Positions 2,652 through 30,142 of a stretch of 64,000 nucleotides of DNA are shown one piece after another. Source of the DNA: Macrostomum lignano. Its lineage: Eukaryota. Location of the stretch: assembly GCA_002269645.1 (NCBI GenBank), contig NIVC01001624.1, forward strand, positions 22,141 through 86,140. Reading direction: 5' to 3'. Under the pieces are notes generated by a model that saw only the letters and a list, made by a program, of their open reading frames with translations, had not been told where the DNA came from and made no database searches. How positions within the stretch are numbered: position 1 is the first letter of the stretch; every line of letters starts with the position of its first letter. The position numbers and the translations under genes were made by a program.

Positions 2652-3239
2652 TTCTGCTTTGCAGAGGCAATTCGCCCTCTGCCGAAGCGTAGGCGCGCGC
2701 TTTTATTAGAAACTGGGCTCGGAGGGCAATCAGGGGAAGAAAGCGGGAAGGGGCAAACGGGGCAGAGAAAGAGGCGCCTTCAACTTTCCATGCGCTCCGG
2801 CGCGTACACAGCGGCGACCCCTGGAGTTTACGACCGAATTGTTGGCCAGGGCTGAACTTTCCACCGAAAGGGAGAAAAATGCGCAGAGACGGCGGCCGGG
2901 CGGGCGGCGGCGAGGAAAGCGGGAGAAATTTTTTGCCTGCGGCGAAAATTCGACGCCCCCCCCTATTTCGGATCAGCCGATTCGAGGTTCAAACGCGCCG
3001 AACGAATCGAGCCGAAGAGCTGCGGGCAGCGGATTAAGAAGTTCGCGAGAGATGAAAGCGGATGAATTCATAAGCGAGTCTGATCGATGCTTTTAAAATA
3101 CCCAAACACGAATTTGCGCGCAGGAGGCCCGACGTGCAGCAGAAAAGTACAAACTCTGGTGCACCAGGACTGGTAAGCTGCCTTCGAGGTAGCAACTTCG
3201 GTCCGACTTCATACCGTATTGGGTGAACTGTCTTCTACA

Positions 3240-5055: not shown

Positions 5056-5866
5056 CGTACAACGCTGTCACGGGCACAAAATGTGGCTTGACAGATCGCG
5101 AAATGAATACAAGAATTGAATTTCTCCATGCCAAGCATGCGAGCTTATCGGATTAGCCTAATCCCTTGATCAATAAATATTTCTCGGCAAAGTGCAGCAA
5201 ATGTTTGCGCTTAGCGAAGCCAGAAATTCCTACGCCAACAAAAACAGCACGTACGAGTATTTGGCGCAGAAATGCCTGGAGGCCCGCGATTCCCAGAAAT
5301 CGTACTGGGGGTCTGCGGCTACTGCCAACTCAAAACAGCTCAGTCAGAGACTGGAGGAAGAGCAACTCTGAGCAGCAGTGCGAGCAGACGCAGAATTTCC
5401 GGGTCAAAGTGTTGTTTTTCTCGGAAGATTTAGCCAACAACTCGCTCGTCATCTACTCTTAGTAGCAATGCACCAACTTTACTGTTTAAAATGTATGACC
5501 CGGGGACGTGGCAACCTTGGACTGAGGCAAAGTAGGCAAAGAGTCTTTCAAGCTTTGAACACTTGCGCTGCTGCAGGTGGCCGCGGTGGTTCCCGCAGAA
5601 CCTGTCACTCAATCGCATTCAGTACGTCATCGTAAAAAATAAACTCGGAATCGCGGTAGTTTTCATCGTTGAGTTCACCCAGCCAACGAACTGGTCCAGT
5701 GGCTCGGCTGGACCAGTGCTAGAAATTACTTTGACAAGTTCGGGCCTTATGCCGCACACTGAGTCCAACCAATGCTCCACTCCAGGGCAATCTCGTGAGC
5801 AAGAGTTGTCTCACGAGTTCCTGAGTATACCCATTAATGGGTAACTTAGTTCCACGCAGCTGTGCA

Positions 5867-10000: not shown

Positions 10001-13000
10001 GACTCACCCTGATGTATCCTGACTCTCTCTGCCGCCTCCTGACTCTCCCTGATGCATCCTGACTCACCCTGATGCATCCTGACTCTCCCTGCCGCCTCCT
10101 GACTCTCCCTGATGCATCCTGACTCTCCCTGATGCATCCTGACTCTCCCTGCCGCCTTCTGACTCTCCCTACCGCCTCCTGACTCTCCCTGCTGTCTCCT
10201 GACTCTCCCTGCTGTCTCCTGACTCTCCCTGTTGCCTCCTGACTCTCTCTTCTGCCTACTGACTCTCCCTGATGCATCCTGACTCTCTCTGATGTATCCT
10301 GACTCTCTCTGATGTATCCTGACTCTCCCTGCCGCCTCCTGACTCTCCCTACCGCCTCCTGACTCTCCCTACCGCCTCCTGACTCTCCCTGCTGTCTCCT
10401 GACTCTCCCTGCTGTCTCCTGACTCTCCCTGTTGCCTCCTGACTCTCTCTTCTGCCTACTGACTCTCCCTGTCACCACCTGACTCTCCCTGTCACCACCT
10501 GACTCTCCCTGTCACCACCTGACTCTCCCTGTCACCACCTGACTCTCCCTGTCACCGGATGACTCTCTCTGCCACCTCCTGACTCTCCTTGCCGCCTCCT
10601 GACTCTCCTTGCCGCCTCCTGACTCTCCCTGCTGTCCCCCGACTCTCCCTACTGCCTCCTGACTCTCCCTGTCACCTCCTGACTCTCCCTGCTGTCTCCT
10701 GACTCTCTCTGTTGCCTCCTGACTCTCCTTGATGTCTCATGAATCACCCTATTGCCTCCTGACTCTCCCTGCTGCCTCCTGACTCTCCCTGTCACCACCT
10801 GACTCTCCCTGTCACCACCTGACTCTCCCTGTCACCGGATGACTCTCTCTGCCACCTCCTGACTCTCCCTGTCACCTCCTGACTCTCCCTGCTGTCTCCT
10901 GACTCTCTCTGTTGCCTCCTGACTCTCCTTGATGTCTCATGAATCACCCTATTGCCTCCTGACTCTAACTGCTGCCTCCTGACTCTCTCTTCTGCCTACT
11001 GACTCTCCCTGTCACCACCTGACTCTCCCTGTCACCACCCGACTCTCCCTGTCACCGGATGACTCTCTCTGCCACCTCCTGACTCTCCCTGTCACCTCCT
11101 GACTCTCCCTGCTGTCTCCTGACTCTCTCTGTTGCCTCCTGACTCTCCTTGATGTCTCATGAATCACCCTATTGCCTCCTGACTCTCCCTGCTGCCTCCT
11201 GACTCTCCCTGTCACCACCTGACTCTCCCTGTCACCACCTGACTCTCCCTGTCACCACCTGACTCTCCCTGTCACCGGATGACTCTCTCTGCCACCTCCT
11301 GACTCTCCCTGTCACCTCCTGACTCTCCCTGCTGTCTCCTGACTCTCTCTGTTGCCTCCTGACTCTCCTTGATGTCTCATGAATCACCCTATTGCCTCCT
11401 GACTCTAACTGCTGCCTCCTGACTCTCTCTTCTGCCTACTGACTCTCCCTGTCACCACCTGACTCTCCCTGTCACCCGATGACTCTCTCTGCCACCTCCT
11501 GACTCTCCTTGCCGCCTCCTGACTCTCCCTGCTGTCCCCCGACTCTCCCTACTGCCTCCAGACTCTCCCTGTCACCTCCTGACTCTCCCTGCTGTCCCCT
11601 GACTTTACCTGCTGCCTCCTGACGCCCCCTGCTGTCGTCTCCCTGATTCTCCTTGCTCTCTAATCCCAGCCCCGCACCCATCCTCAGCCAATTTCACACT
11701 GTCTGCTTACAACTTGGCGGCTTTGCCCTCTCCAGTCGATTTCCGCGGCAGCAGGATGGGCGACCGGCGGCCGAGGTCGCCGAAAGTGGCGCCGCGGACG
11801 GCCAACGCGCAGGCAACGTGCGCCCACATGACGGCGCCAGTAGATGCCGGGGCGTCGGCCAGCAGCGCAGGCTTGAGGGCGCCGCCGCGGTGTCGGCACA
11901 GACGGCACTGGGCAGCGGCAGCCGCCGCCTTGTCCACCCCAGCGGCGGTGTCGGAACAGCAGCGGTCGCAGAGCCAGCCGGCCGCTGGCGTGTCCTCCGG
12001 GCAGCCGTAGCAAAATGCGTGCACGGCCACTCGGCACCTGGTGAAGTTGAGGAAAATGTTATTTTACTTACTTAGTAAGTAGTGCCTAAGGAATGATGCT
12101 TCGATAATTTAGGTGCATAACTTAAAAGAATTGAGTATCCGAATGAACTAAACACAGATTTGACCAACTCAGGAGGCGGCAGAGGGTCAGGGGACAGCAG
12201 GGAGATTTAGGAAGGCAGCAGGGAGAGTCAGGGGACAGCAGGGGCAGTCAGGGGACAGCAGGAAGGGTCAGGGGACATCAGGGAGGGTCAGTGGACAGCA
12301 GAGAGGGTCAGGGGACAGCAGAGGCAGTCAGGGGCAGTCAGGGGACAGCAGAGGCAGTCAGGGGACAGCAGGGGCAGTCAGGGGACAGCAGGGGCAGTCA
12401 GAGGACAGCAGGGGCAGTCAGAGGACAGCAGGGGCAGTCAGGGGCAGTCAGAGGACAGCAGGGGCAGTCAGGGGCAGTCAGAGGACAGCAGGGGCAGTCA
12501 GGGGACAGCAGGGGCAGTCAGAGGACAGCAGGGGCAGTCAGGGGACAGCAGGAGCAGTCAGGGGACAGCAGGGGCAGTCAGGGGAAGGCAGAGAGCCAGC
12601 AGCACTCCCAATGTCTGAGTGAGAACAATCTGAGCCAGTTAGCAGCAAGGCGCAGACCTGGCACACTGCAGCACAGCGGAGAATTCCACAGTAGACCGGC
12701 CCAGATCGAAGGGGCCGTCCTTGGCGAACAGCAGCTCGGGCAGCCAGACTGAGGAGCGGCTCTGCGGGCACTGCTTCCTAGGCGAGAAGCCGGACCAGAG
12801 GACCTCGGCGCGGCGGTCCGGCAGCAGGAAGAAGGTGCAGACGGCGCAGTGCGGCTCCACCAGCGCCATTCGCTCGTTTAGCGCCGCCTCCGCCGCCGGG
12901 TTGGCCGGCGCGTCCGCCCACAGGGCGCCCTGGGCGGCCACGAAGCGGCGGCCGCTGGCGCCGAACTGCACCGGGCAGGCGTCGGCGGAGACGGTGGCGG

Positions 13001-14862
13001 CTGCTGGCGCCTCAGCCTCGCCGCCGATCGAAGCAGCAGCCGCGGAGGTGGCGGCGGCCTCGCGCAGCAACTCAATGGGGCCGCAGTGCCGGCGCGGATC
13101 GTCGCTCAGCGTCAGCGACGGAATGTCGGACGAATGGTCGCTGCCGGCGTCCCAGTCGGCTGCGGCAGCAGTGTCAGCGGAAGAGGAGACGACGGGCGCC
13201 TGCGGCTGCGGCGTTGGCGCCGGCTGCGTTGGTCGCCGCTGCCGCTTGATGTCGTCCTCGGGGTGCGGGCTGGCGTCGCGGCCCTCCAGCCAGTCCTCGT
13301 ATCTGCGGGGACAACAGGCGAGGAATTGCGCCATCATTGATTTGATGCTGGTGCGCTACTGGCTACTGAAAAGTAGGCTGAAAAGGCATTAATAGTAACC
13401 AGATTCCAGGCCTCAAGGAGTCTCAAAAGTATGTGCCCAGCCTTGCTCTTACCAACGAATGAATTTTTTTTATTAGAGGCAGGGGGTTGTGTGCACCCTG
13501 GCGGACTTTAAGCGACATAGGCACACAACCGGCGAGAGGCATTACTGCCCATTCCGCCGACTCCCCTGAGCAGGCACACAAGCGCACGGATACGTACGCA
13601 GGCACACACTCACACAGGAGTGTACAGCGGCCCTAACTTTATATTATCGTTAGGCATGTACAACTTCATTGCGCCTTGGGCGGTTGGCTCTCAAGGCCGT
13701 TAATTGCACGAGCAGAGCCAAGCCGAGATTCCAATTCAGCCCCAAATTAATGACTGCACTTGGAATCGAGCCTGGGTCGCTGGCACACCAGAGCCGGCAC
13801 TAGACTGCTGGGCTACGGCCCCTTTACCAACGAATGAAGGTATATAGAAAGGATTGCCCCCCCGTACAAGGCCTCTCAAACTCACTTGTCCGGCTCGAAC
13901 TTGCGCACAAACAGGCCCATGTCGATCTTGACGCTGTCCTTCTGGCAGCAGCAGAGAGTGGCCTTCTTGCCGTAGGAAATCCAGCGCCTGCTAGCAAAGT
14001 TGGTGCTCTCGGCGCAGTTGTAGCCAACGTTGAAGCCGCTGTGGTAGCCGTACGGAAAGGTGATGATGATCTCGCCCGAGTGCTGCGTGATCTTGTCAAA
14101 GGGCACGCCGTACTTGTGCAGCACCTGCGGACTGATCAGAGTGGTTTTGTGCCGCAGGAACGCCGGGCAGCTCTTGTAGGAGGCGCCGAAGAAGCTCTGG
14201 GCGAGGCGCTCCAGCTTGCGGCCGTGGGCGGGCGGCACGGCGTACCAGTGCTTGGGGGCGCCGAAGTGGATGTAGTTAATGGAGTACAGGTCCATGTCCT
14301 CCGTGTGCCAGGGGAACGAGGTCTTCCACATGCCGAAGTACAGGTAGGGCGTGTTCACGCCCTCGATCTTGACTCCGGAGTCCAGCCCGATCTCGTCGAG
14401 GATGCTGCCCAGGTTGGCGATGTTCCAGCAGGTCTGGTCGGGGTCGGTGACGGAGCCGCTGACGTCGGCGCCGTAGATGCCGGGGTTGATGGTGAGGTTG
14501 GCCCAGTACTTCTTCTCCAGGTGCTCCATGTCTGTGTGGGCAGGGGTCTGGTACTTGCCGCTGGTGGCTAGCTGCCGAAAGCTTGCCACTGTCAGCGGCT
14601 TTTGCAGCTCGTTCCACTGGCTGAACACGCCGCCCGTGCCGCAGACCTTCTGCCTGATGGGGCCGGGGATGACCAGCTGGTCCAGGTCCGCGTAGCCTCC
14701 GCGGCGGGGCACCCACTCGGCCGGCGGCACGATCTTGCACACCCCGGCCAGGTGCGCGTCGGCCGACTCGATCTTGGCGATGTAGGCGTTGAAGTCGCGG
14801 AACTCCTCCATGGTGGGGCGGAATGTCTGGATCCTGGTGCCGGTTGAGCCTGGGCTGGCCAT
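7040..14862 (-). CDS. KDM4: Lysine-specific demethylase 4 (JMJD2 family): JmjN, JmjC, PHD-Zn knuckle-PHD, double Tudor, long low-complexity C-terminus. Exons 14862-13886, 13302-12658, 12037-11711, 9637-9223, 8812-7040 (1378 aa)
   Basis: JmjN ([14 protein letters not shown]...GVCKIVPP); JmjC with intact Fe ligands ([14 protein letters not shown]...GYHSGFN); PHD (LQCAR|[25 protein letters not shown]); Tudor ([18 protein letters not shown]...[14 protein letters not shown]). All four introns are GT-AG with matching phases 2,2,2,0, and the total of 4137 nt is divisible by 3. Confidence 0.96.
9670..11640. repeat. 20-bp minisatellite in KDM4 intron 3 (GACTCTCCCTGCTGTCTCCT-type), with variant blocks
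   Basis: About 98 units. The variant changes along the array (gatgtatcct -> gccgcctcct -> gtcaccacct), with higher-order repeats. Confidence 0.97.
12170..12590. repeat. 10/20-bp minisatellite in KDM4 intron 2 (CAGGGGACAGCAGGGGCAGT), the reverse complement of the intron 3 array
   Basis: GCAGGGAGAGTCAGGGGACAGCA at ~12218 matches the reverse complement of TGCTGTCCCCTGACTCTCCCT-type units near 11500-11600. Confidence 0.92.
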
Positions 14863-14989
14863 GGCTGCGGGGGCTGCTGGTGCAGTGCCGGGGTTGCGAA
14901 GCCTTAACTTTGATTTATACTCCTAATATTCAGCAAATTATGCTGTAAGAAGCAATTGACAATTTACAATTGACAAAGAAATTGGGCTG

Positions 14990-15365
14990 ACGGGTGTGTG
15001 GGGTGCAGGATGGGGTAGTTGGTGTCTGGAGTGTGGGGTGCAAGATGGGGTAGTTGGCATGTGGGGTGCAAGATGGGGTAGTTAGTGTGTGGGGTGCAGG
15101 ATGGGGTAGTTGGCATGTGGGGTGCAAGATGGGGTAGTTAGTGTGTGGGGTGCAGGATGGGGTAGTTGGCATGTGGGGTGCAAGATGGGGTAGTTGGCAT
15201 GTGGGGTGCAGGATAAGGTAGTTGGCATGTGGGGTGCAGGATAAGGTAGTTGGCATGTGGGGTGCAGGATAAGGTAGTTGGCATGTGGGGTGCAGGATAA
15301 GGTAGTTGGCATGTGGGATGCAGGATGGGGTAATTGGCATGTGGGGTGCAGGATAGGATAGTTGT
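14990..15365. repeat. 28-bp minisatellite (GTGGGGTGCAGGATAAGGTAGTTGGCAT)n upstream of KDM4
   Basis: About 13 copies read directly. Confidence 0.93.
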
Positions 15366-17580
15366 GTATGAGGTTATAGGATGGGTAGTTGGCATATGCA
15401 GTTTCACTTAATTGATTGATTCTAATTGATATATAGCTAGGCATAGATTTAACCAAGACAATATTGGCTGACTGACTAAGTTTTACATTTTAAAATGATA
15501 ATTCTCTATCATAACTAATTGTCTTAGTTGTGCCTTACACTAGTTATTTTTCTTAATAAAAGATATTAGTAAAATATTAACTTAATAATTTTCGTTTCAG
15601 TATATACAGATAATAAAAACATTTTTATATATTTTCTCTATAAGCATAATATAATAAAAAACTTCTAACTTATATTTGTTAGTTGAGAGCTATTGTATAA
15701 TATAATCTAGATCATAGAAAAACTACAATGCACATGATTTTTTATAATCTGGATCTTGATTAGAGAATAGACTATACATACAAAACATATTAGACATTTA
15801 AATCTTTAATAAACAAACAAAATAAGAATTTTATAGCAATTTTCTAGGTTGCTTTGCATCATCATTTGTGTGCATTTTTTATATTTGTTGTTATTTCTAA
15901 TAATAAACACTATAATATTTTATTTTAGCAACTTCTATATTATGTCTAGTTAGAGTTTTATACTTTTATGATACATCTTCTATTAGTTATCTTATATAAG
16001 TTATCTTGTTTAAAATATATATGTAAACTTAGAAACTAGACTTTAAAAACTAAAAACCCAAGACTTAAAGACTTTTTGCATTTTATACAATATATTTACC
16101 CATTACCACTTTTGTTAGACTTTCACCATGTCTATTTCATTCACTTATATTTATCTCAGTTTTCATATTAAAGCTATCAATATTTGATCACTAACAATGC
16201 TACTTATATGGCAAAGCATGCTGCTTTGCTAAAATTACCATTAGTATCTTGTATGTAAGATATCACCTCAAAGTCAATGACATTGTTGTTCTGGAAAAAA
16301 GATTGAAAAGTTCATTTTTAAGTGTAAATTTCAAGCTTTAAAGTTTTTAAGCAAATTATCAGCCAATAAAGGGTCATTACAGGGCCAATAAGGGTCCTTT
16401 ATTGGCTGATAAATTGGTTGATTACTCATTTTTCTTGTTTATACTATTTAAAGCAGAAAATTGATATGCATAAACACTTGTTAAAATGCCTTATTACAAG
16501 CCTAGAAACTGGAAAGCTTGAAATAGTTGCAAAACAAAAAGGTCATTTGTACCTATCTTTGGAAGATGTAGTGCATGTCAGAATTTTCTAGCATGCATTG
16601 AAAATGTCAACATGTATATCATGCATTTTAAAATATCATCAAGCAACTGAAAGAAAGTATAGTTATGAGCATACACAATTGGCATGCAATGTGCATTATG
16701 GCATATCAGTGTAGGGCATATGATAGATAGATGTTCAAAGTTATTTGCCACAGAAAGTTTTTTTACAATTCAAGGCTAAATTAGAAGAGTGGTTTTTCTA
16801 AAGGTATTAACTAGGATAAATATAAATAATTGAAAAGATATTGACAGTTTGTTAGTAGGACCATGTACATGTAGGTTGTATCATTAGTTTAGTTTTAACC
16901 AAAACTTAGATTATAAAATGAAAACCAAAAAAGGTCCTTTATTGTTGCCATTGGCGTAGCCAGAAATTTAATTCAGGGAAGCCCATTCAATACCCAAAAG
17001 AGAGAGTATAGGAGGGGGATAAATTTGGAGGGGGCCAAAGGGGCCTATTGTTGCAACTGCAATTGGCATTGGTGTGCATTTACTTGGGGTTAGCAAGGAA
17101 ATGAAATAAAATTCAAAGCATTCTGGTATGTATTTAGCATGATCTACACTATGGCATTTATAGTTGCAATATAAAAAATGTTATTTATTCTTGCAATACT
17201 GGCCTAGATTTGAGAATACTCATTTTTAGCATGTATTTTAACTATTCAATTTTTGTTTGGGTACCCAGTATAATCTAGGCTCTGGGTTGACAATAAGTTT
17301 AGGCCCCTAGCCCAAATTCTAGAACTGACATATTATTAGAAATTCCAGCTTATCCAGACATCCAGGTTTAACAATTTTAATAATAAAAGATTATAGAAAA
17401 ATGTTCAAAAATAGATATGCAAAGAAAACTAGAAAATTCCCAACTTTATAATTGTATCTTTTAAAATAAAATGCCATCTAGCTCAAATAAGAAAGCAATT
17501 TTCAAAAAATATTTGATATACCACATCTTTTGAGGCTAGGCCTACCTATACTCTATAGAATTATTCATTATATTATTTTT

Positions 17581-18137
17581 GCTTTAATTTAATTTCTTTC
17601 TATTTTAGAGTCCAAAATATGAAACAAGTGAACAAATTAATAGTTTAATATGTACTGATAACAAATTTGTTTGTTATAGTCAATCACCACTCTAAACCTA
17701 GCTATACTTCCACAGGTGGCACATTCCAACTCGAGGCTACTAGTTGTCTAGCTATCTAGAGTAGAAGTCTAAAAATTAGAAAAGTAAGCAATGGCTTGAC
17801 TTGAATCCCAGTATTGATAGCTTGGCAACTAATTTTTTAAATCTCAAATGCATTGCCCTTAAAAGGTCCCTTTGTATTGTCTTAGTCTTTTGACCATAGA
17901 CATATTTTAATACTTTGTGTGTATAAACCAATAATTCAAATATTGTAGAGATTTATCCTAAAAAATTTACCTAGTTACACTATATTATCCTATGTTAAAG
18001 TAGTAGGCTTACCCTTGTATTGTAATATAGCAATTGACTATAACAAACAAATTTGCCACTAGTACATGTTAAACTATTAATTTGTTTACTTGCTTTATAC
18101 TTTTAGATTCTAAAAATCAAAAAGAATTGAATTCAAG
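17581..18137. mobile_element. Degraded foldback/MITE-like element with ~105-bp inverted arms (17581-17686 and ~18031-18137)
   Basis: GTGAACAAATTAATAGTTTAATATGTACTGATAACAAATTTGTTTGTTATAGTCAATCA versus the reverse complement of 18031-18089. No TSD recognised. Confidence 0.7.
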
Positions 18138-19214
18138 CAAAAAAAAATTAACAAACAGTTCTATAAGATAGCTCCATAGCTTGGATTGTGTAGGCCTATT
18201 AGTGTATGCTGGGTTTAATATTGGAAAAAATGAGGAGACCTTGTTTGTATGCAAGGTTTGTGCACCAATACAAAAAAACTTGTCATTTGACACAATCATG
18301 CTTGGGTGCAACCAAGGGATTCACCCAGCCATTTCTATTGGCAACATACACATGTAAGTTGCTATTGGATGGAAGACTATTAGCCAATAGCAACTTACAT
18401 ATGTGTGTTGCCAATAGAAATGGCCAAGTGATTCCCAAGGTTGCGCATGTATGGACACAATGTATCTGCTATGCCATGTACACCGGGATATAACCTGATG
18501 TACACTACACTGAAAAATGGTAAGACCTTTGTTGTATACAGGAAATCCTGGCGTAGGCCTATATGTCTCCTTTCAAACTATGGGATAGACCCTTTTGATA
18601 ATTTGTCATTTGGCACAATAATGGGTCCTAGTCATTTCGTCAACTGGCGTTTCATCAACTGGCCATTTTGTCAACTCAGTTTTATCACTGGTTGTTTCGT
18701 CAACTAGCCAATGAAGCGATCTCAAACCTTGGTCACTTCGTCAACTGGCCAACAGGAAGTGTTCCAACATTGGTCACTTCGTCAACTGCCAATAAACTAC
18801 CCCCCCAGCCGCAAAAAAAGTAAAACTGAACCCTGAAATGACTAAGTCGACAGGCTAATTAATGTTCATACCCTCTGCAACATCTGCCGGCTTTTGATCG
18901 ATGCGTCTCTGTTATACGCTTGTACATGTACTAACAAAATAAAATGTGCTCATGTGTTTGAAACGTGTGCAGCACGACGGGGTTGACATGCCGCGTGTGC
19001 ACATTTGTATATTTTTAATTTTGAATGCAGAAGTTAATTAAGAAGTAGTACATGTAGTTGAGGAGAACCCGGACCAAAGATAATGCTTGAAGTGGCCGGG
19101 TCCTCTATTCGCAAAACATACATATAGAAAGCATTCCAAATCAAGCCATTACATACATGAATGTGGTCATGTATGACTGCGCAGCCGGTCGCTTGGACGG
19201 AACAGGTCGGCGCG

Positions 19215-19440
19215 GTGATACAAAAGCCGTGTTGGTCACTCGCGTAGGCGATCTTGAAGGCGGCGCGCAGCAGGCCAGCATGCGCCGCGTCAACTTGTTG
19301 CTCGAGCGACTTCATCAGCGTCCAGGTCTTGACAGTATACAGCAGGACGGTCTCGATCACCGCCTCGCCTGGAACAACGCTGCCCTCTAGCAGTCAGCTG
19401 TACATTAAGCTGGCCTTGGACTGCAGGACTCCCCAGACTA
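19215..19440 (-). mobile_element. RTE-clade LINE fragment (post-RT region)
   Basis: Minus-strand translation IETVLLYTVKTWTLMKSLEQQVDAAHAGLLRAAFKI resembles the RTE post-RT motif LLYG.ETW.L.K.. Confidence 0.7.
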
Positions 19441-19760
19441 CCATGTAAATGTACTGTAGCTCAAGCCAGTAGTGTCGGAACATTTCAGAGTTGGGGGGGG
19501 CTAATGATGGGAGGGCACATTGCACATAATTTCTTCTAATCTAAGGGCACCCAAACTGCAGCTACATGAGAAGGAATGCACGAATCAAGAGCTAGCACGC
19601 CGCTGTGGTACTGCACCTAATATCGCTGATCAGTTTGCGCGTCTGCCTGTGCCTTTGCGTCTGTCTGCTCTTGTCTGCTTGTGCCTTCTTACAGTGCATT
19701 GTACATTTTAGTGTTATACGGCATGATTGATCGATGAGCGCGCGTGAATCATGCGTAATT

Positions 19761-20788
19761 CAAGGACTTCTAGACTAACAGGACGTAAAACTCAAAGATC
19801 GTGCAATTTTTTGGAGGCCACGATTTCCTGGAAAAAATACACTGCAAAGATAGGAAAAAATCTGTTTTTTGTCACAAAATCTGTGATTGTATTTGATCTG
19901 GGGCAGTGAAGACTACCATTCTTTTAATTTACCATGCACAACATGTTACTCTATTATATTTTCATATAGCTGTGTAGTGAAGTTTTCATTTTCATATTGT
20001 TTTCACTTTATTTCATAAGCCCAAAGTTGCAAACTCACAAGTGGCATTAGCCAAATATCAAATTCAAGAAAAGAAAAGCTATTCAAATTTGTAATATAAT
20101 AATATTTTTAGCCTTTAAAATAAAAATTATAAAAGGACTAATCAATGTTTTTTCTTATAGATACCTAGTAAAAATGGTTAGGGCCTATTTTTGTGATTAA
20201 GTCTATTCTTCTTAAATCTTAGTCTTAAATATAGGCTTGGCTTAAAAACTGATAATACAGCTTTCTCAAGCCTAGGTAACCAACCATATGAAACTATGTA
20301 TTGATAATCTATATATAATAAAAAAATCATTGTCTAAATTTAATTACTTATTAGGCTAGATAGTGTAGTGATAGGTCTAGTTCTAGTAGGCCTAGGAATT
20401 AGTATAGTTACTAAACCTACAATAATAGCTTAAGACTAAGAGTACCTACTTGCAATGTTTTTATACTTTATTTTAAAAAGAACAACACAAAAAGTTTGGC
20501 TAATGCCACTTGTGAGTTTGCAACTTTGGGCTTATGAAATAAAGTGAAAACAATATGAAAATTAAAACTTCACTACACAGCTATATGAAAATATAATAGA
20601 GTAACATGTTGTGCATGTTAAATTAAAAGAATGGTAGTCTTCACTGCCCCAGATCAAATACAATCACAGATTTTGTGACGAAAAACAGATTTTTCCTATC
20701 TTCGCAGTGTATTTTTTCCAGGAAATCGTGGCCTCCAAAAAATTGCAAGATCTTTGAGTTTTACATCCTGTTAGTCTAGAAGTCCTTG
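19761..20788. mobile_element. hAT-like MITE, 1028 bp, with ~295-bp inverted arms
   Basis: Arms 19761-20055 and 20495-20788 start CAAGGACTTCTAGACT. 8-bp TSD GCGTAATT / GCATAATT differs by one CpG transition. Confidence 0.88.
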
Positions 20789-22749
20789 GCATAATTATAT
20801 ACTCCGATCAAGAGCATTACCGGATATCAAGATTCGCTGTGGGGGCTTCGGTTGACTGTGCACAGCGGGGTGGAGGGGTGGGAATTAGGCGCACGCAGTC
20901 CACCAATTTTCACGACTCCATATATAGGGGACTTTATAGCAGTCCTCGACGCGTTTTGATAGAAGAACCCATGTTATGTAGTCGCATGTATGGTCGCATA
21001 ACACACAAATACTCAATTTTCATTAATGCCCGGATGCATATGGGTATGAGTGCGCATGGGGTGACGCATTTGCATAGAATATTTGCATCGAAACATTTAA
21101 CCTAATGGACATACAGTCTGGTATTGCAGAATTTGTTCATTTTTAAAAATAAGGCAATTAATAAAACAAGTCATCGATATAGCAATAATTGTAAGCTATA
21201 CAAGATATGCAGCTGTATCAGCTACATACGTATATCATTCATATAATGAAAATTTTAGTCACTTTGTCAAAAAGCAAATTGGAAGGACTTAGGCATTGGT
21301 CACTTCGTCAACTACAAATAAAGTCGCCCCAACACTTTGGTCACTTTGTCAACCGAGTTGACGAAACGCCAGTTGACGAAATGACCATCACCCACAATAA
21401 TAGCCTAGTCAGTATATAACAATAAATATAATACATATGAATATGATATAATCTCTAGGCCCTACCTATAAAAATATAAAAACCTATAAAAGATCTCTAA
21501 GTAAAAAAAACTATGGTATGGAGTAGGCCTAGGCTATAAAATCATTAAAATCACATTTGCTAAAAATTAAAACTTGATATAAAGCAAATAGCATAAAGAC
21601 AAAGTGCATTGATTTTACAGGCTGTAGAGATCTTGGCTGTAGAGGTGTTTTTAATTAATGAATAAATTAAATGAATAGATGGTCGATTTCCAAATTAAAT
21701 AAGGACAGGGTTTTAAAAAATGCTACAGTAACATATGCCTGAAACATATGCCTGAAACGCCTGAAACTCATAGGAGGCCTAAGAAAATAAAGAGGTGTAT
21801 GTACATCAACTTGCTGCCTACTACTACAACAATTTTTTTCGCCAATTTTAATAAAATTAAATTTGTGACATTATACTTCGACAAGTATAACGAGCGCCTC
21901 AGACAACCTACGTTTTATGATAGGCCTACACCAAAACTAAGCCAAAAGCAGCAAAATACGCTTTTAATTTTCGGCAGGTCATAATGTATATATTTTGCAG
22001 TTATATTTTGTATAACTTTTTTTGAGTTGGCCTTTGTTTTTGAACATAAAGAAAATAGACGTGTTGAGCTCTTGACTGAGAATACTATAAAGTCCAAAAA
22101 GAAAATTGTTCTTAAGTTGGATCATGATTCATGAAAAATGAAAGTTAATTAGTCATCTATTCACTGCTGCTATATACTGTTAGTCTTTTCAAATCCTGCT
22201 GATTCAAAATCGCATTGACTCCTTTGACATTGTCACAATCACAATCAAGAAGACAAGAATCAATGTATGAAATGAACAATAAAAGTTAAAAATAAGCAGA
22301 CTTATTTCATAGACACAGAACTCTGTGGTCATAGATAGGGTTATTATGTGCTTTATATTTTTTTTGGTTTTTGTTTACTAGGCCTACTTAATGTTAATAT
22401 TTTCTTATCAATTGACTCCCTCAAAATTTAAAGTAACACTAACACTGAACTTAAATATATCATGCACTTACTATAGTAACAGACAATGTTAGGCCTAGGC
22501 CTTAGGATTAGGAATGGGAAGTGTGGTTCACATTGCTAGAAATAAAATTTAAAGATAGGCCTATAAGTATATTATCTGGCTATCTAGGCTATTTTTGCTA
22601 AAAAATGTGCATGATAACACATTGAAGTGTGCAATTAAATGATAGGCCCTTACTCACGACTCACTTATCCAATGGATTGGTTTAGACTTATCAGTTATTT
22701 CTAGATAAGACTAGGTCATAGATAACTTGTAGAAAAAGGAGCATCAAAG

Positions 22750-24015
22750 TATTGGGTTAGGCCTATCATAAAAGTTTTGAGCATTTTCTTTAAACTTCTA
22801 GAACTTTCTCTAAAGAAATTTCTAGAATGTTCTATGGGGGTATATAAGAGTAACCAGTGTGCACTACCGTATCCATATAGATAACTGATAAGCTCAACCT
22901 GTAACTACAATGGCTATATAACAACACAATCAACTACCTTATTTGAGCATCTTTACTTTTCTGCTTCAAGCTGGGCGACTCAGCAGTTGAGGTGCATTGC
23001 AAGTTATGTCAGGCATATGACAAGGACTATCTAAGCAAGCAACGCTGCCATGCCTGGTTTGTGCATTTCAAAAAGGATGATGAATCCCTCAAAGACAATG
23101 AGCACTCTGGTCACCCACCTGAGCTTGATATCTAGCAGCTTGCCTTGCTTGTCGAAGCTTAGCCACATCTCACAATATGTGAAATGGCAGAGTACTTTAA
23201 GGTCTTTGCCATGACCATTGACCGCACCCTTCATCAACTTGGCAAGGTGCATAAGCTTGGTCAATGGGTTTTGCACAAACTTTCATATAAGAACAAGGAT
23301 CAATGCATCATCACATGCACCCAACTCCTATCCTATTGTTGCAACCTAGGATGGCTTAATACCCTGGTGACTGGAGATGAGATTTGGGTAGCTTATTTTA
23401 ACATCACACGCAAGCATCAGTGGCTTGGCATGGGGGATCAGCCACAACCAATGCCCAAACCTGATCTATACCAAAAGAAGGTCATACTGTGTGTCTGGTA
23501 GAATTCCATTGGAATTGTCCACTGGGAGCTTCTGCCTTGTAACACCAACATCACTGCCAATGTCTATTGTGAGCAGCTAGATAAACTGCACTAGGCAATT
23601 GTCAAGCAGCAGGGCATTGGCACAAAAATTCAATTTCTTTGCAACAATGCCTGACCTTACATGGCAAAGAAGACACCACAGAAGTTGCTTAAGCTGGGCT
23701 GAAAAGTCATGCCCCACCCTCTATACTCGCCTAATCTTGTATTATCAGACTACCACCTGTTCCGCTCAATACCAAACCACATAAATGGCATGACATTAAG
23801 AGATGAAGAGGAGGTGAAAGCCTGGCTTGAGCAATACTTCAAGTCATTGCCACCTAAGTTCTTTAAGAAGAGCATCCATGATCTTATCGCCAGATGGCAA
23901 TAGGTCATTGATCAGGATGGTGATTATATCCTAGAATAGAAACTGTTATGAGACTAGAAAAATAAATTCAAAGTTTGAGTACAAAAACGCTCAGAACTTT
24001 TGTTACAACCCAATA
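22750..24015 (+). mobile_element. Full-length (~1.26 kb) mariner (DD34D) element, inactivated by multiple nonsense codons
   Basis: TA-flanked TIRs (TATTGGGTT...AAAAGTTTTGAGCATTTT / AAAACGCTCAGAACTTTTGTTACAACCCAATA). One continuous frame from ~22941 to 23940 carries WVLHKL, VTGDE, KKVILCVW*, NNA*PY and HPLYSPNLVLSDYHLF. There are 34 residues between the second and third catalytic positions (23643 and 23748). Confidence 0.93.
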
Positions 24016-25494
24016 GTTGATCAGCATGCTAGAGCCAAACCACATTGTCTATTCATTGGCCAATACTGCAATATGAATCTGGATAATAATGACTATATGA
24101 TTGAACCAGACCTTAGGTTAGAAATTGGGACTACTACTCTAAAGCATTTTGTATAGATTTTGAGTTTTAGGAATTAGGACATTGAGACAGAAATTTTTTT
24201 GGTTTCTAAATATAGTCTAGGCTATACTTTGGAAAATATAGTTAGTGTATATCAAAATTTTCTAAGTGTATATTCTAAAACCTCAATGCAGTGTGCACAG
24301 CATGCAAATGGAGAAAATCTATAGTTGTCAGTGTCTACTATGCATGTCATGGCATGTTTGTATATGTTAGTACATGTTACGACATGTGCAGGCATACCTA
24401 TAAAAAATACAAAAATGTCTTATTGTGTTGCAATGGCTTAAACATTAGCATTGGCTAGATGAAATTTGGCCTTTTGATCTATTGTTATATGCTAGCATGA
24501 ACTTAGCATGGTCCCAACTATAGATTCTAGGATTATGCCATGATCCTAACTATGGACTAAATCACTTTCTAAATAATAAATTAACATAAAATATCCATTA
24601 GACTTTAGATCAAAATCCTTAGCTTAGTCTTAGTCTGCTTATATGCTGTGTTCTAATGTATCCCTTTTAATTATCATAAACTTATTATTATTATAACCGT
24701 AAAGTAAAAGAAATCTAGGTTTAACCTTGGTATACCTAGCCCTTGTAAGTAGTTTGTAAGTTCATAGAATTAACATAGGATATGCTTATCTGGCTAGTAT
24801 TTTAGATGAAGGCAAAAAGATCATAGATGTTTCTAGGATAGTCAGTTTCTCCTTTTGCTAAGAATGACCAAATTTATACTACATCTTATTGAATTAAAGG
24901 CAAAATTTGATTTGATGTTCAATGGTCTTCTTCTCTCCTATGCCATAAAAAGACAGATAAGAATGCAATTAGTTTGCAATAGGATTTGTCTTAGAAGAAC
25001 TCATGGCATCTATGATTTTTAGACCTAATAATAGCCTTTTTGATAGTATTTTCTAAAAGACCTATAATATTCTGATAGATAATCTAACATATATTCTAAT
25101 CAACCTAAACTCGATTTTTTTAGTTATCGTAAATAAGAAAAGACCCAATCTATTATGATTAAAGTATATTAAAGGATATAGTTTTAAAACTAGTAACTTA
25201 GCATATAATATAAATATAAGTTCAGTTACTCATAACACTATTTTGCTATAATCTCTATAGTCCATAGTATATAGATTGATACCAAATGGCAATTGTTTCA
25301 ATATTCAAATAAAACTTTACTGCCTTGTATCATCTTGCTATATTTGATTGCATTTCATATTTATAGACTTATCTATTACCATTTTATAATCTTCATATTC
25401 TATTGTGTATTTTCTACTTTTTTATTTGTCTAGTTCTACTGTTTTGCATTGAAAGTTTCAATCTGCCATTGCCTTCTTCTCCACTCATGCAGCC

Positions 25495-26091
25495 ATGGCG
25501 CACTCCAGCCAGCCCCGGAAGGGCATTCTCAAGCACCGCGCCAGCTTTGACTGCACAGGCGGCTCCAGCTTCCACCAGCCGCCAGACAGAGAGGCTGCCG
25601 CAGCGCAGCCAAGCTGCCCGACAGACGCCGAGGGCCGCAAGCTGTTCCAGTGGGACGAGATGAACATCCTGCGCACGTACCATCCGGTCGACAAAGACTA
25701 TGGCCACATGAAAATCGACGAGGCCCCGACGCCCTACGAAGCGTCCTCGGGGGCGTCGGGCAGCGATGCGGAGGCCGCGGAGGCGGAGCCGGGGCCCAGC
25801 AAGGACCAGCGGCGCCGGGCCAGCTTCAGCGACGCTGTGCAGCCGGACATGCTGGCCCAGCGGCTGGAGGAGACCGCCGCCGCCGACGAGCTTGAAGCCT
25901 GCGGCTCCTCCGACGTCAATCACGACGCCGACGCTGACGACTCGGAGCTGACGGAGGCGGAGCGGGAGCACCGCAGGCGCTTTGACGAGCTGCGCCGGCA
26001 GCACTACAACGAGTTCCAGGCGGTGCTGCTGGCCAGGGCGCGGGCCGCCGCCGAGGATGACGACGAGGAGGAGGACGAGGGCGAGAAGTAG
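25495..26091 (+). CDS. PPP1R2: Protein phosphatase 1 inhibitor 2 (IPP-2), single coding exon, 198 aa
   Basis: KGILK (SILK) motif, [30 protein letters not shown] (I-2 signature with the GSK3 Thr site), F..LRRQHYNE helix and acidic C-terminus. Confidence 0.95.
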
Positions 26092-27320: not shown

Positions 27321-28575
27321 CTTCCTTTCGTGAATTTTCTAAGTTAGATCGCAATGGATCGCAACGAGGATACTTTTCCGAGAGCCAAACTGCTCTGTAG
27401 TTCTAGAGAAACCCCAAAACTAGCGATTTACCCCCGCTCTAATTATTTCCCCGGGTTAAAACTACTGATAGTAGGCAAAAAGCATATTTGAACCCACAAT
27501 AATTCCCGTTCCTAAAATAATGCCCTACTACACAAAGTTAAAATGTGACTCGTGTCTCGACCCTATTGGCAGATAGATAAATTAATCTTAGCATATTCAA
27601 ATTATACTGCTGCCCTATGAGTAGTCACATGCCTGTTGAAAACGTTACCTTGACAAGCATTGCTAAAGGATCGTCTCAGGGGCGACTCTGACTTTTTTAA
27701 CGACTCAAACGACTGCAATGCGACGGAGAGGCGGCTGTTGAGTCGCGAGCGCATCGCCCGAGCTGCAGAATCGTAAAAGAGCCGCGAAAAAAGTTCGTCG
27801 TTTCAAAGTCGACCTGTGTTACCTGCCACCACTCTGGGGTGGCGCAAGTGACTAGGTCATTAACTAGCTGTTCAATCTAGTTAATGTATTATTCAGCCCA
27901 CGGGTCCGTGGAAGGAGGGTCTGGCTGCCCTGTGTGCCTGCTGTCTGCAATAATTTTAGCTTATATTTTAACATGCAGTTCATTTTCGCTCCAGCTGCTC
28001 CCCTTCATTATAGGCCAGCGCTTCTGTTAGTTGCTACCTGAAATCGGAGTTGTACTGCATTTTGGTTTTATTGCTCCATGTTTTCATTTTATCATTGCGT
28101 CATGCTACACTTTTCTGTTACATTTTGCAGCCTTCTTCGGCTATTATTTTACTGCGCTGAATATACTACTGTTTGCAAAGTAGACTATTAGTGGTGAGTA
28201 GTGTGTGCGTTTGTGCTGCTGGATTTAGTTTGCATGTTGTTTTATACCCGCCTAGTTGTGTTAGAGAGGCACAATTGCTGTGGTTATTTATACATGTCTC
28301 AGTTTGCCGCATAGAGCAAATATTTCACTTTATATTGATTTTGTCTGGCTGCTGTAAATACTTTTATAAGTTTATTATAACAATTTGGTATCCGCTTGCA
28401 TCTCCCAGCGATCGCTTTATCAACTCGCAGCTTACAAATGCACATCTTTATTTTAAAGATGCGGATCGTCTATTTATCCGCCGAAAAAATTGTTTTTCGT
28501 TGTAGAAATAATTATTGGAAGCTGTTTGAATTCGTGCCATTTTTTCACTTTATATTCTCCGATGCTATCTTTGAT

Positions 28576-29478
28576 GGTGGGACTTCAGTGCCGGCTGGTA
28601 CTCAGCCAGGTGGGACTTCAGTGCCGGCTGGTACTCAGCCAGGTGGGACTTCAGTGCCGGCTGGTACTCAGCCAGGTGGGACTTCAGTGCCGGCTGGTAC
28701 TCAGCCAGGTGGGACTTCAGTGCCGGCTGGTACTCAGCCAGGTGGGACTTCAGTGCCGGCTGGTACTCAGCCAGGTGGGACTTCAGTGCCGGCTGGTACT
28801 CAGCCAGGTGGGACTTCAGTGCCGGCTGGTACTCAGCCAGGTGGGACTTCAGTGCCGGCTGGTACTCAGCCAGGTGGGACTTCAGTGCCGGCTGGTACTC
28901 AGCCAGGTGGGACTTCAGTGCCGGCTGGTACTCAGCCAGGTGGGACTTCAGTGCCGGCTGGTACTCAGCCAGGTGGGACTTCAGTGCCGGCTGGTACTCA
29001 GCCAGGTGGGACTTCAGTGCCGGCTGGTACTCAGCCAGGTGGGACTTCAGTGCCGGCTGGTACTCAGCCAGGTGGGACTTCAGTGCCGGCTGGTACTCAG
29101 CCAGGTGGGACTTCAGTGCTGGCTGGTACTCAGCCAGGTGGGACTTCAGTGCCGGCTGGTACTCAGCCAGGTGGGACTTCAGTGCCGGCTGGTACTCAGC
29201 CAGGTGGGACTTCAGTGCTGGCTGGTACTCAGCCAGGTGGGACTTCAGTGCCGGCTGGTACTCAGCCAGGTGGGACTTCAGTGCCGGCTGGTACTCAGCC
29301 AGGTGGGACTTCAGTGCCGGCTGGTACTCAGCCAGGTGGGACTTCAGTGCTGGCTGGTACTCAGCCAGGTGGGACTTCAGTGCTGGCTGGTACTCAGCCA
29401 GGTGGGACTTCAGTGCCGGCTGGTACTCAGCCAGGTGGGACTTCAGTTCCGGCTGCATGGTACTCAGCCAGGTGGGAC
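28576..29478. repeat. 33-bp minisatellite (GGTGGGACTTCAGTGCCGGCTGGTACTCAGCCA)n, ~27 nearly identical copies
   Basis: Direct periodicity; the only recurrent variant is CCG->CTG. Confidence 0.97.
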
Positions 29479-30142
29479 TTGTGGCTTGGGTTCAAAAGTA
29501 AGAGAGTATGCAGGAAAGTACAGATGCGCATATTTATTTTTCATAAAGTTATTACAATACTAAAATAATGTTCTTTATAGGCAATAAAATTTTCATTCAA
29601 ATCGAGCTCACCAGTTTCATAGAAAAATTCAAATTAGAAAAATATTTCACTTTGCAGTAGATCTGTTGCCCGCGGTACAACATGTACATTAAAAGAGTAA
29701 GATGTTTCACAGTGCAGCCGCAACCATTGGTAACTACACATTGACTGCTCTCTTTCATATTCATGCCTATTTTCATGAAAATTTCAAGAATTTTTTGTAG
29801 CAGCAGAGCAAACTATGGAGTTGGCGTCTGGTTCTTGAGCAGTCTCTGCTTCGATTCCGTGGGGGATTTTAGACTTGGATGGGCAGAGATTGTAAATGCC
29901 TGTGGGTGCGAAAGTCCGGCCTGTTGTACACCCTGTGAGAGCACGTACGTCCGCATCCGGGTGCGTCAGTGGGAATTCTTCTGCCTTCAAGTCCCAATTG
30001 CATACAGCATTTTTATCTTACGAGGCTGCTCTGTGGCTGCGGCTGGATTAGAGGAAAAACAAAAGAGATCGACCCAGAAGGTGTTCATTTACAGTAAACA
30101 GTCTGGTCGCTTAAATAAGCGGTTGATGAATCAAATACAAGC

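Follow-up and report, generated by a model that had tools for sequence, protein, structure and literature searches.

Locus-restricted C>T hypermutation of transposons in Macrostomum lignano and its possible origin in CpG and non-CpG cytosine methylation

We analyzed a 64,000-nucleotide stretch of Macrostomum lignano DNA (the window), in which transposons lying between a KDM4-type gene and an IPP-2 gene have undergone C>T hypermutation. The changes occur on both strands in a characteristic sequence context, they are limited to some loci, and they have continued since the duplication that separates the window from a second contig, in a genome that encodes DNA methylation genes. As their cause we suggest cytosine methylation targeted to particular loci, both within CpG and outside it, followed by deamination, an explanation that we hold with modest confidence, a little better than even. 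The part played by methylation, its reach beyond CpG, and its action in the germ line are what we infer from the mutational footprint.

Composition of the interval between KDM4 and IPP-2

The interval is made up of old, mutated segments interspersed with younger insertions (Table 1). GC steps from 0.52 to 0.24 at ~15400 and from 0.24 to 0.52-0.68 at ~25400, and the KDM4 and IPP-2 flanking exons have a CpG O/E of 0.7-1.1 overall, in agreement with the sharp edges and CpG-rich flanking exons described in an earlier note on this DNA. That note had counted three CpGs in 15400-18400; there are exactly three (15593, 16955, and 17732), at a GC of 0.29 and a CpG O/E of 0.05, and the block has few recognizable relatives besides the repeats at 16563..16953 and 17554..18173. 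The segment 22001-25400 is likewise poor in CpG, and CpG O/E is ~0.8 in the remainder of the window outside the depleted island. The single ~10-kb domain that the earlier note envisaged is instead a mosaic, as 18401-22000 keeps 102 CpGs (O/E 0.77), with patches at 18.4-19.8, 20.6-21.4, and 21.8-22.0 kb. In the depleted blocks, a CpG O/E of 0.05-0.17 is accompanied by a CA/TG O/E of 1.2-1.7, so that CpG loss is matched by TpG/CpA excess. The abundance of CTAG, TATAG, and CTATA was also borne out: CTAG O/E is 2.0-2.8 inside versus 0.73 elsewhere in the window, and the other two words are enriched as well. Throughout the CpG-free blocks, beyond the mariner alone, CTAG, TAG, and CTA are raised and CAG and CTG are lowered.

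Table 1. Features of the interval and its boundaries, in window positions
Feature	Position	Strand	Details
KDM4-type JmjN/JmjC exon; left boundary gene, CpG-rich	13882..14922	-	ORF; ~62% identity to animal KDM4A/B/C; PF02373 + PF02375; CpG O/E 0.67-1.04
Tandem repeat, CpG-less	14950..15400		GC 0.52-0.57; self-matches 14994-15398
AT-rich block, virtually CpG-free	15400..18400		CTAG O/E 2.78; TAG/CTA raised, CAG/CTG lowered
Dispersed-repeat fragment, family B	16563..16953		Retrieved copies all CpG-poor too, so no direction of change inferable
Hypermutated MITE, family A	17554..18173		Inverted arms ~130 bp, 17554-17684 / 18033-18165
Site at which duplicate contig C1623 has an additional CpG-rich transposon of 4.9 kb, carrying terminal inverted repeats	18020..18027		Transposon absent in window
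CpG-bearing patch, 69 CpGs	18401..19800		CpG loss rapid: transition differences between duplicates at 7/69
MITE bounded by terminal inverted repeats of 295 bp (97.6% alike)	19761..20788		AT-rich by nature; not hypermutated beyond CpG
CpG-bearing patch, quickest recent CpG loss	20601..21400		Duplicates differ by transition at 9/34 CpGs
Hypermutated Tc1/mariner copy	22770..24015	+	10 CpGs; GC 0.42; 12 premature stops
CpG-poor AT-rich block beside mariner	24016..25400		GC 0.23-0.34
IPP-2 (protein phosphatase inhibitor 2) exon; right boundary	25453..26091	+	PF04979 E = 7.6e-31; CpG O/E 0.84-1.14

The patch at 18401..19800 is probably a younger insertion. Its non-CpG transitions between the duplicates amount to 0.2%, and a Pfam search with its ORF at 19034-19393 returned no family. 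All copies of the MITE at 19761-20788 are AT-rich, with a GC of 0.32-0.35 for those in the window, in C1623, and at L023. Its spectrum is ordinary: comparison with L023 gives 12 C>T/G>A, 12 T>C/A>G, and ~16 transversions, and its own arms are separated by 3 transitions at CpG, 3 transversions, and 1 indel. The earlier note's caveat that this MITE diverges normally within the domain was therefore well placed.

Substitution spectrum and sequence context

The longest ORF of the mariner copy (23163-23501) matches PF01359. The ancestor of this copy was inferred from three CpG-rich subfamilies, and changes were counted only where the ancestral base was unambiguous. The CpG-rich consensus codes for an intact transposase of ~340 aa, and 10 of the 12 premature stops in the window copy were created by C>T or G>A, in support of C>T as the direction of change. 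The window copy carries 68 C>T/G>A changes versus 2 T>C and 8 transversions. They are divided equally between the strands (32 vs 33 in a count of 65), and 37-38 of them lie outside CpG, with CpA the commonest context. By site, C>T affected 30/67 CpG (45%), 22/130 CpA (17%), 6/78 CpC (8%), and 9/116 CpT (8%), on a background of 2/398 for T>C (0.5%) and 8/789 for transversions (1%).

The earlier note had read both this mariner and the inverted arms to its left as dominated by transitions, and both readings hold; between the two arms (17554-17684 and 18033-18165) there are 29 transitions and 16 transversions. Measured against an ancestor represented by the CpG-rich copies L057/L061, the MITE they belong to shows C>T at 6/14 CpG, 18/45 CpA, 3/23 CpC, and 6/40 CpT sites, with T>C at 6/223 and transversions at 19/345. 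The spectrum and context order of the window mariner recur in this MITE and at another three hypermutated mariner loci, independent of one another (C10, L016-20, and C199); on contig C10 the patch extends over just ~3 kb. The analysis covered two families (mariner and MITE family A) and a handful of loci. Hypermutated copies have 11-18% of non-CpG cytosines and ~85-92% of CpGs changed, compared with a neutral clock of 1-2%. Outside CpG, the per-site ratio of C>T to T>C is ~23:1.

In the pooled data, the C>T rate depends on the +1 neighbor (G 0.47 > A 0.22 > T 0.10 > C 0.06) and, within CpA, on the base that follows, CAG (0.28) and CAC (0.24) exceeding CAT (0.14) and CAA (0.11; p = 8e-5). The effect of the -1 neighbor is mild (pooled, T 0.20 vs G 0.08; in the window copy, TCA 0.31 vs GCA 0.00). 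Mammalian DNMT3A/B favor CpG, and after it CpA with C or G as the next base, and the non-CpG methylation that they lay down in oocytes, ES cells, and neurons follows the same order, CG>CA>CT>CC (PMC7335073). As a footprint in sequence, the order found here with its CAG/CAC preference matches what a DNMT3 would be expected to leave, and matches neither APOBEC nor Neurospora RIP.

Restriction to loci and pace of change

Copies of the same families that are just as old but lie elsewhere lack this two-stranded excess of C>T/G>A outside CpG. In three control mariner copies whose transversion age is equal to or greater than that of the hypermutated ones (L013, L015, and L021), non-CpG C>T is 0.9-1.7%, about the same as their T>C, and CpG loss is just 2-4%. 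The earlier note had made its reading depend on how such equally diverged copies compare; their spectra differ from those of the hypermutated copies by a pooled odds ratio of 11.5 (p = 7e-27), so that the refutation it had put forward fails. Hypermutation is tied to the locus and not to the repeat family, as other family copies in CpG-normal surroundings are untouched.

Three groups of mariner copies that are 96-99% alike (L003/5/6, L007/8/13, and L009/10/11) also lack the C>T excess and hold 51-63 CpGs within the element (59-69 with 100-bp margins); some of these pairs may represent assembly redundancy, yet no fewer than three subfamilies remain intact, each of them at several loci. Duplication alone is thus not the trigger, and the process is not repeat-induced.

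Changes since the duplication were counted by comparing the window (C1624) with the duplicate contig C1623. In the mariner, 11 C>T have arisen versus 1 A>G and 3 transversions. The post-duplication shares of C>T (7/~68) and of transversions (1/8) match, which suggests steady accumulation rather than bursts, and this pace would fit the slow decay of a methylated locus better than a burst. At L022, an older copy (transversions 4%), the C>T load does not exceed that of the window copy, which is younger (transversions 1%); among copies of ~70% identity or more, which the search reached, C>T accumulation is therefore not simply clock-like. In 18401-22000, CpG transitions between the duplicates reach 18/115 (15.7%) versus 105/1766 (5.9%) outside (p = 3e-4), and the non-CpG background there is equal to or below that outside; the ratio of CpG to non-CpG rates is ~25 inside versus 3-5 outside.

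Candidate enzymes and competing explanations

Genes for DNMT1, DNMT3, DNMT2, SRA-domain, and TET/JBP proteins occur in the genome in about three copies each, DNMT1 matching a PDB DNMT1 chain at E = 2e-64 and DNMT3 matching DNMT3A at E = 7e-45. A genome search with PF00145 returned three groups only (DNMT1, DNMT2, and DNMT3), with no fourth, RID/Masc1-type group among the hits. Exon-by-exon searches of the genome, an insensitive design, gave 0 hits to PF08210 (APOBEC_N), PF18778, and PF18782 (NAD1/NAD2), the NAD searches being without a positive control. Of the enzymes that the earlier note had proposed to look for, DNMT1 and DNMT3 are thus present, while an RID-type group and an APOBEC-like gene were not found by these searches. 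M. lignano has been reported to retain DNMT1 and DNMT3, with low global 5mC in adults (PMC11292947, PMC9246332).

The region between KDM4 and IPP-2 is a transposon nest, parts of which, we propose, have carried dense germ-line cytosine methylation set by the animal DNMT3/DNMT1 system, and probably still do. Methylation would fall on CpG and CpA, above all CAG and CAC, and less on CpT and CpC; methylated CpA would be unusual for an invertebrate. Deamination of 5-methylcytosine to thymine would then give C>T on either strand. This would account for the loss of nearly all CpGs and of roughly 10-20% of other cytosines (about 1/8), for the stop codons in the transposase frame, and for the fall in mariner GC from ~0.49 to ~0.41 and to 0.2-0.3 in older pieces. 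The probably younger insertions within the island retain CpGs while losing them several-fold faster than the rest of the window.

Two rates weigh against this proposal, as does the C>T load of L022. The implied CpA rate is ~1/4 of the CpG rate per site, which would need non-CpG methylation far heavier than is known from any invertebrate; to our knowledge, a survey places the non-CpG methylation system in vertebrates, and among animals it is treated as essentially a vertebrate trait. The CpG rate is ~75x the neutral background, whereas methylated CpG in mammals mutates at 10-20x, and the difference allows for an enzymatic boost.

In a true RIP-like defense, an enzyme would actively make C>T in chosen repeats during germ-line development, at a pace well beyond the spontaneous decay of 5mC. 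Candidates would be DNMT3 or DNMT1, working as a deaminase, and a deaminase not yet discovered that is drawn to methylated or piRNA-marked DNA. We regard such a defense as doubtful, although several observations speak for it: the large magnitude at both non-CpG cytosines and CpGs relative to the neutral clock, the transposase knocked out by nonsense mutations as in RIP, the mutation of either strand and the scarcity of indels in the window copy, and an extent of C>T that does not scale with transversion age (L001, L004, L016, and L022), which hints at a self-limiting process. In Neurospora crassa and other Ascomycota, RIP likewise converts C:G to T:A on both strands of transposons, with few indels, creating stops, AT-rich islands, and TpA enrichment, and a review considers that methylation put to RIP-like use "may well have evolved outside fungi" (PMC9246332). 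However, CpG is the top target here and CpA, the one preferred in Neurospora, the second; near-identical repeats escape, so that homology is insufficient, whereas RIP mutates all repeats longer than a few hundred bp with ~80% identity; no RID-type DNMT was found in the genome, and the agreeing post-duplication shares point to gradual change, whereas RIP is confined to one sexual cycle. The RIP product index (TpA/ApT) is 0.96, above its threshold of 0.89, but the substrate index, (CpA+TpG)/(ApC+GpT), is 1.34 and so not depleted below 1.03; the composite is -0.38. Methylation with deamination, as the earlier note read it, is the best fit, given the context and the DNMT1/DNMT3/SRA/TET genes, and strict RIP is not supported. 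Slightly less likely again, in our view, is a full animal counterpart of RIP in M. lignano, in which a germ-line defense would mark chosen transposon islands, perhaps via piRNAs, and DNMT3/DNMT1 or a partner enzyme would actively mutate C to T at CpG and CAG/CAC; transposase genes would then be permanently destroyed rather than merely silenced.

Ordinary CpG-methylation decay combined with a regional AT bias (e.g., where a pocket without recombination has lost GC-biased gene conversion) would make a non-CpG process unnecessary, and we consider it improbable. CpG loss is indeed the largest component, with TpG/CpA in excess; mutated copies sit in AT-rich flanks, and the transition/transversion ratio between the duplicates (1.7 for the whole domain, 1.4 at 15400-18400) resembles that of the flanks. 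Yet C>T:T>C outside CpG lies far above the mutational bias of 2-3:1 in other animals, and the strong +1/+2 dependence (CAG/CAC) is unexpected under fixation bias. S>W versus W>S transversions number 23:12 for the hypermutated copies, against 15:4 for the controls, the excess being limited to C>T transitions; biased gene conversion is largely refuted because transversions lack the GC>AT bias. We give still less weight to an AID/APOBEC-like single-strand DNA deaminase that edits transposon DNA in transposition, replication, or transcription, which we think very unlikely. Such families are present in many invertebrates, the 5' T preference described above would suit them, and vertebrate APOBEC3 footprints are also G>A/C>T clusters that inactivate mobile elements. 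Those footprints, though, are strand-specific, 5'-driven, and made on reverse-transcription intermediates, while the targets in this case are DNA transposons together with their flanks, both strands are affected equally, in-place change went on after duplication, and strand runs in the window mariner (33 vs 33.5 expected) reveal no strand-coordinated clusters. Mainly the 3' neighbor (G>A>T>C) governs specificity, which is typical of methyltransferases and atypical of AID/APOBEC enzymes, whose specificity follows the 5' neighbor (TC, CC, or WRC), and the genome gave no APOBEC_N, NAD1, or NAD2 hit in the searches above.

The proposed locus-targeted methylation followed by deamination has parallels in several systems. 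Silenced vertebrate transposons likewise turn CpG into TpG/CpA next to spared CpG-rich promoters, with a DNMT1/DNMT3/UHRF1/TET toolkit; unlike them, the window has a near-normal CpG O/E elsewhere, so methylation must be island-confined, and non-CpG cytosines are lost ~10x faster than in control copies. Plant transposons decay by C>T in all contexts (CG/CHG/CHH), and the CAG/CTG (CWG) preference resembles CHG loss; plants, however, rely on CMT3 and DRM2 guided by small RNAs, whereas here a chromomethylase-type hit is absent and the sole candidate is DNMT3-type. Mammalian non-CpG methylation, for its part, is not known for a strong mutational footprint, and we know of no description of CAC/CAG methylation in flatworms or invertebrate transposon islands.

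The low global 5mC of M. lignano together with this footprint suggests that methylation may be concentrated on particular transposon islands, where it would extend to non-CpG sites. The mutational outcome would be transposons that are permanently inactivated and AT-rich islands created beside CpG-rich promoters. M. lignano is a tractable model with RNAi and transgenesis, which makes the question directly testable, and the combination of CpG loss, CTAG/TAG gain, and CAG/CTG loss provides a sequence-only marker for mapping such islands genome-wide.

Composition and limits of the AT-rich domain

The AT-rich, CpG-poor domain of the window (15400-25400) had been proposed in an earlier note as a single ~10-kb stretch of C>T/G>A change resembling fungal repeat-induced point mutation (RIP). 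In 1-kb bins, 15-18 kb has a GC content of 0.30-0.35, 1 CpG/kb, and a CpG observed/expected ratio (O/E) of 0.04-0.05, and 22-25 kb has a CpG O/E of 0.08-0.19, while the remaining window is mostly at 0.6-1.1. The compositional details of the note hold: its three CpGs are found at 15593, 16955, and 17732; the edges are sharp, with GC falling from 0.52 to 0.24 at ~15400 and climbing back at ~25400; and the TA-containing words CTAG, TATAG, and CTATA are all enriched (CTAG O/E 2.0-2.8 within the domain vs 0.73 in the window's other non-genic parts).

A single uniform domain, however, is rejected: 18401-22000 still has 102 CpGs spread over three patches (O/E 0.77), the MITE at 19761-20788 is naturally AT-rich, and a depleted patch on another contig, C10, spans ~3 kb. 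This MITE has a GC content of 0.32-0.35 in all copies seen, and its comparison with a distant copy gives 12 C>T/G>A, 12 T>C/A>G, and ~16 transversions, an ordinary spectrum that the earlier note had allowed for in its caveat on MITE divergence. Repeat family B was dropped as a witness, since every fetched copy is CpG-poor and no ancestor can be inferred.

Two further features lie at compositional boundaries. A tandem repeat with a GC content of 0.52-0.57, which separates the KDM4 exon from the AT-rich block, has zero CpG and a CA/TG O/E of 1.57; it may be CpG-decayed without non-CpG loss, or its unit may simply be CpG-less. Where the CpG-free block meets the first CpG-bearing patch, a stretch of 137-140 bp is 82% identical to its own reverse complement.

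Features of the window and related loci (window positions unless stated)
Feature	Location	Length	Remark
Likely exons	2193-2702 (-), 9154-9723 (-), 11707-12063 (-)		by eye from translations
Long tandem repeats	3177-5156, 9924-10511, 12147-12752, 28575-29500, 31072-31730		near-perfect
KDM4 JmjC exon			left of domain
CpG-less tandem repeat	14950-15400
Repeat family B	16563-16953
Hypermutated MITE	17554-18173	620 bp	C>T spectrum taken against CpG-rich copies
Self-complementary stretch	18305-18444	137-140 bp
CpG-poor mariner, locus 1	22770-24015		plus C1623 duplicate
CpG-poor mariner, locus 2	contig C10 (L004)
CpG-poor mariner, locus 3	L016-L020		two alleles, single locus
CpG-poor mariner, locus 4	contig C199 (L022/L026)
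IPP-2 exon	begins ~25400		PF04979; domain's right edge
Satellite	54000-56080		period ~34 bp
C1623 element	18551-23461, reverse-complement coordinates of the fetched C1623 stretch	4.9 kb	absent from window

Substitution spectra of mariner and MITE copies

A genome search found ~40 pieces related to the window mariner; the fetching query was itself a mutated copy, which biases the sample toward mutated relatives. By GC and CpG content the copies form two sharply distinct classes: CpG-rich (GC 0.46-0.52, CpG O/E 0.68-0.98; 51-63 CpGs when full-length, or 59-69 with 100-bp margins counted) and CpG-poor (GC 0.40-0.44, CpG O/E 0.09-0.19), the latter comprising four loci. L016-L020 (on contigs C2393, C2219, C1764, C261, and C208) were rejected as five independent witnesses; they carry the same 4-kb hypermutated stretch in two sequence versions 0.7% apart and exemplify how assembly redundancy inflates apparent repeat copy number in the M. 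lignano genome.

The ancestor was restricted to positions identical across three CpG-rich subfamilies (84-88% mutual identity). Because the CpG-rich consensus has an unbroken reading frame for a mariner transposase of ~340 aa, the direction of change is fixed. Relative to this ancestor, the window mariner shows C>T at 30/67 CpG (45%), 22/130 CpA (17%), 6/78 CpC (8%), and 9/116 CpT (8%) sites, vs T>C at 2/398 (0.5%) and transversions at 8/789 (1.0%). There are two indel events, and 10 of the 12 new stop codons arose by C>T or G>A. As the earlier note had observed, transition-dominated change affects both strands (32 vs 33), with 33 strand runs against 33.5 expected.

The other three CpG-poor mariner loci show C>T frequencies of 0.46-0.49 at CpG, 0.18-0.29 at CpA, 0.08-0.14 at CpT, and 0.05-0.06 at CpC, with T>C at 0.003-0.035; the context order is the same as in the window copy. 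A MITE within the domain (17554-18173) represents a second family that behaves like the mariner. Elsewhere in the genome it has CpG-rich copies with 16-21 CpGs and CpG-poor copies with 0-2; against the former, the C>T changes of the window copy amount to 6/14 CpG, 18/45 CpA, 3/23 CpC, and 6/40 CpT, with T>C at 6/223. In all, the spectra cover two repeat families and some six loci.

The CpG-rich control mariners have transversion ages equal to or above those of the mutated copies (L013 1.3%, L015 1.1%, L021 1.9%), yet their non-CpG C>T is 0.9-1.7%, approximately equal to their own T>C, and their CpG loss is 2-4%. The earlier note had named a shared non-CpG spectrum in equally diverged copies as the result that would tell against it; instead, the pooled odds ratio for non-CpG C>T in mutated vs control mariners is 11.5 (p = 7e-27).

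Extent and timing of C>T change

The region C1623:55001-125000 (L031-L037) is a collinear copy of the entire window 1-64000 at 93-99% identity. The copy fits the known redundancy of the M. lignano assembly, which stems from extra large chromosomes in the sequenced line. The pair provides a built-in comparison for recent change. Since duplication, polarised by the family ancestor, the mariner has acquired 11 C>T/G>A (8 non-CpG), 1 A>G, and 3 transversions. In the window mariner, post-duplication changes make up 7/~68 of C>T and 1/8 of transversions, close shares that fit steady accumulation.

Within 18401-22000, 18/115 CpGs have a transition difference between duplicates vs 105/1,766 outside the domain (p = 3e-4), and non-CpG transitions are not commoner inside than outside. 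CpG decay relative to background is therefore ~25x inside and 3-5x outside, so the CpG-bearing patches resemble younger insertions whose decay is under way. The transition/transversion ratio between duplicates is 1.7 over the whole domain, similar to the flanks, and 1.4 over 15400-18400, a block whose preferred targets have already been exhausted.

Flanks are AT-rich and CpG-poor around mutated mariner copies, which is not so around intact ones, and the patch at the C10 mariner has CpG-normal DNA on either side. The unit of action is thus the locus or patch rather than a repeat family or an extended chromosomal domain. At window 18020-18027, C1623 alone carries a transposon with terminal inverted repeats (CATACATGCGCAAC...), which is CpG-rich (O/E 0.83) and has ~2.2 kb of internal tandem repeats; either it inserted on C1623 after duplication or it was excised from the window.

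Sequence context, methylation machinery, and alternative explanations

Pooled over the four mutated mariner lineages, C>T by +1 base is 0.47 for G, 0.22 for A, 0.10 for T, and 0.06 for C. Among CpA triplets, CAG (0.28) and CAC (0.24) exceed CAT (0.14) and CAA (0.11; p = 8e-5), and among CpT triplets CTG is 0.14 vs 0.07 for CTC and 0.06 for CTT. The -1 base exerts a mild preference (T 0.20, C 0.16, A 0.12, G 0.08). AID/APOBEC enzymes read the 5' side of the target C, whereas the specificity here is on the 3' side; Neurospora RIP targets CpA far above CpG, whereas CpG is the top target here. The pattern is the same as that of mammalian DNMT3A/DNMT3B in deep enzymology, namely CG>CA>CT>CC, then C or G after CA, with 3'-side specificity (PMC7335073).

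Matches to PF00145 in the genome form three groups, each with three loci; their open frames match PDB DNMT1 (E = 2e-64), DNMT3A/B (E = 7e-45), and DNMT2 (E = 3e-26). SRA-domain (UHRF1-type) and TET/JBP genes are also encoded. Of the enzymes that the earlier note suggested seeking, DNMT3 was found; the PF00145 matches include no fourth, RID-like group, and an exon-by-exon search of the genome, with two of its three queries run without a positive control, gave no match to APOBEC_N, NAD1, or NAD2, leaving AID/APOBEC-like deaminases not found. Published work reports that M. lignano retains both DNMT1 and DNMT3 and that its 5mC is low (PMC11292947, PMC9246332); the literature on free-living flatworms describes the genomic 5mC pattern as not known.

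Judged from sequence, locus-targeted methylation of cytosines followed by deamination has the best support: a DNMT3/DNMT1 system would methylate cytosines at targeted loci, at CpG and, unusually, at CpA(G/C), and deamination would then convert the methylated cytosines to thymine. The outcome, dead transposases and AT-rich islands, resembles RIP. RIP in the strict sense is nevertheless not supported, as its testable defining features differ. Besides the target preference and the absence of a RID-type enzyme from the PF00145 matches, there is no duplication trigger, with mariner copies 96-99% alike staying intact. The domain's TpA/ApT of 0.96 lies within the fungal product index (>0.89), whereas its (CpA+TpG)/(ApC+GpT) of 1.34 lies outside the substrate index (<1.03) because CpG decay constantly replenishes TpG and CpA. 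Searching the literature for an animal process akin to RIP yielded fungal work alone.

An older or naturally AT-rich mariner subfamily is rejected because the transversion ages match those of controls, the intact reading frame belongs to the CpG-rich consensus, and each lineage has about half of its changed sites to itself, so that the changes must be of separate origin and do not descend from a single AT-rich master copy. Had strong GC-biased gene conversion acted on the controls and left the mutated copies with the raw mutation spectrum, all GC>AT changes, including transversions, should differ between classes; S>W vs W>S transversions are 23:12 in mutated and 15:4 in control mariners, so S>W changes are not suppressed in controls, and fixation bias of this or another kind is rejected. 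Only C>T transitions are in excess. Deamination through "breathing" of AT-rich DNA predicts CAA/CAT above CAG/CAC, the reverse of what is observed, and hypermutation solely at transposition conflicts with both the depleted flanks and the C>T bias persisting between post-insertion duplicates. We consider an active, enzyme-assisted C>T process unlikely but worth retaining, given that per-site change exceeds a copy's own neutral background ~75x at CpG and ~15x at CpA and that L022, older than the window copy, is no more C>T-mutated.

DNMT1, DNMT2, DNMT3 (L040-L049), SRA-domain, and TET/JBP genes are present at three loci each, in keeping with hidden polyploidy. Introns of the DNMT, SRA, and TET genes are full of coding-looking tandem repeats like those in the window. 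The long window repeats are open in several frames, some within or beside genes, and include a 30-bp unit encoding HQQELSDTTC, a 33-bp unit encoding GTSVPAGTQPG, and a Thr/Pro-rich run; according to the published M. lignano genome paper, simple and tandem repeats amount to 15%. By eye, the likely exons include putative Tudor-like and PHD-like KDM4 parts and an upstream PDZ-domain ORF. The satellite, its period taken from offsets between blast matches, has an AT skew of ~0.6 and 0-2 CpGs/kb; its lack of CpG stems from the repeat unit and not from decay of a known ancestor, and its copy number differs between the window and C1623.
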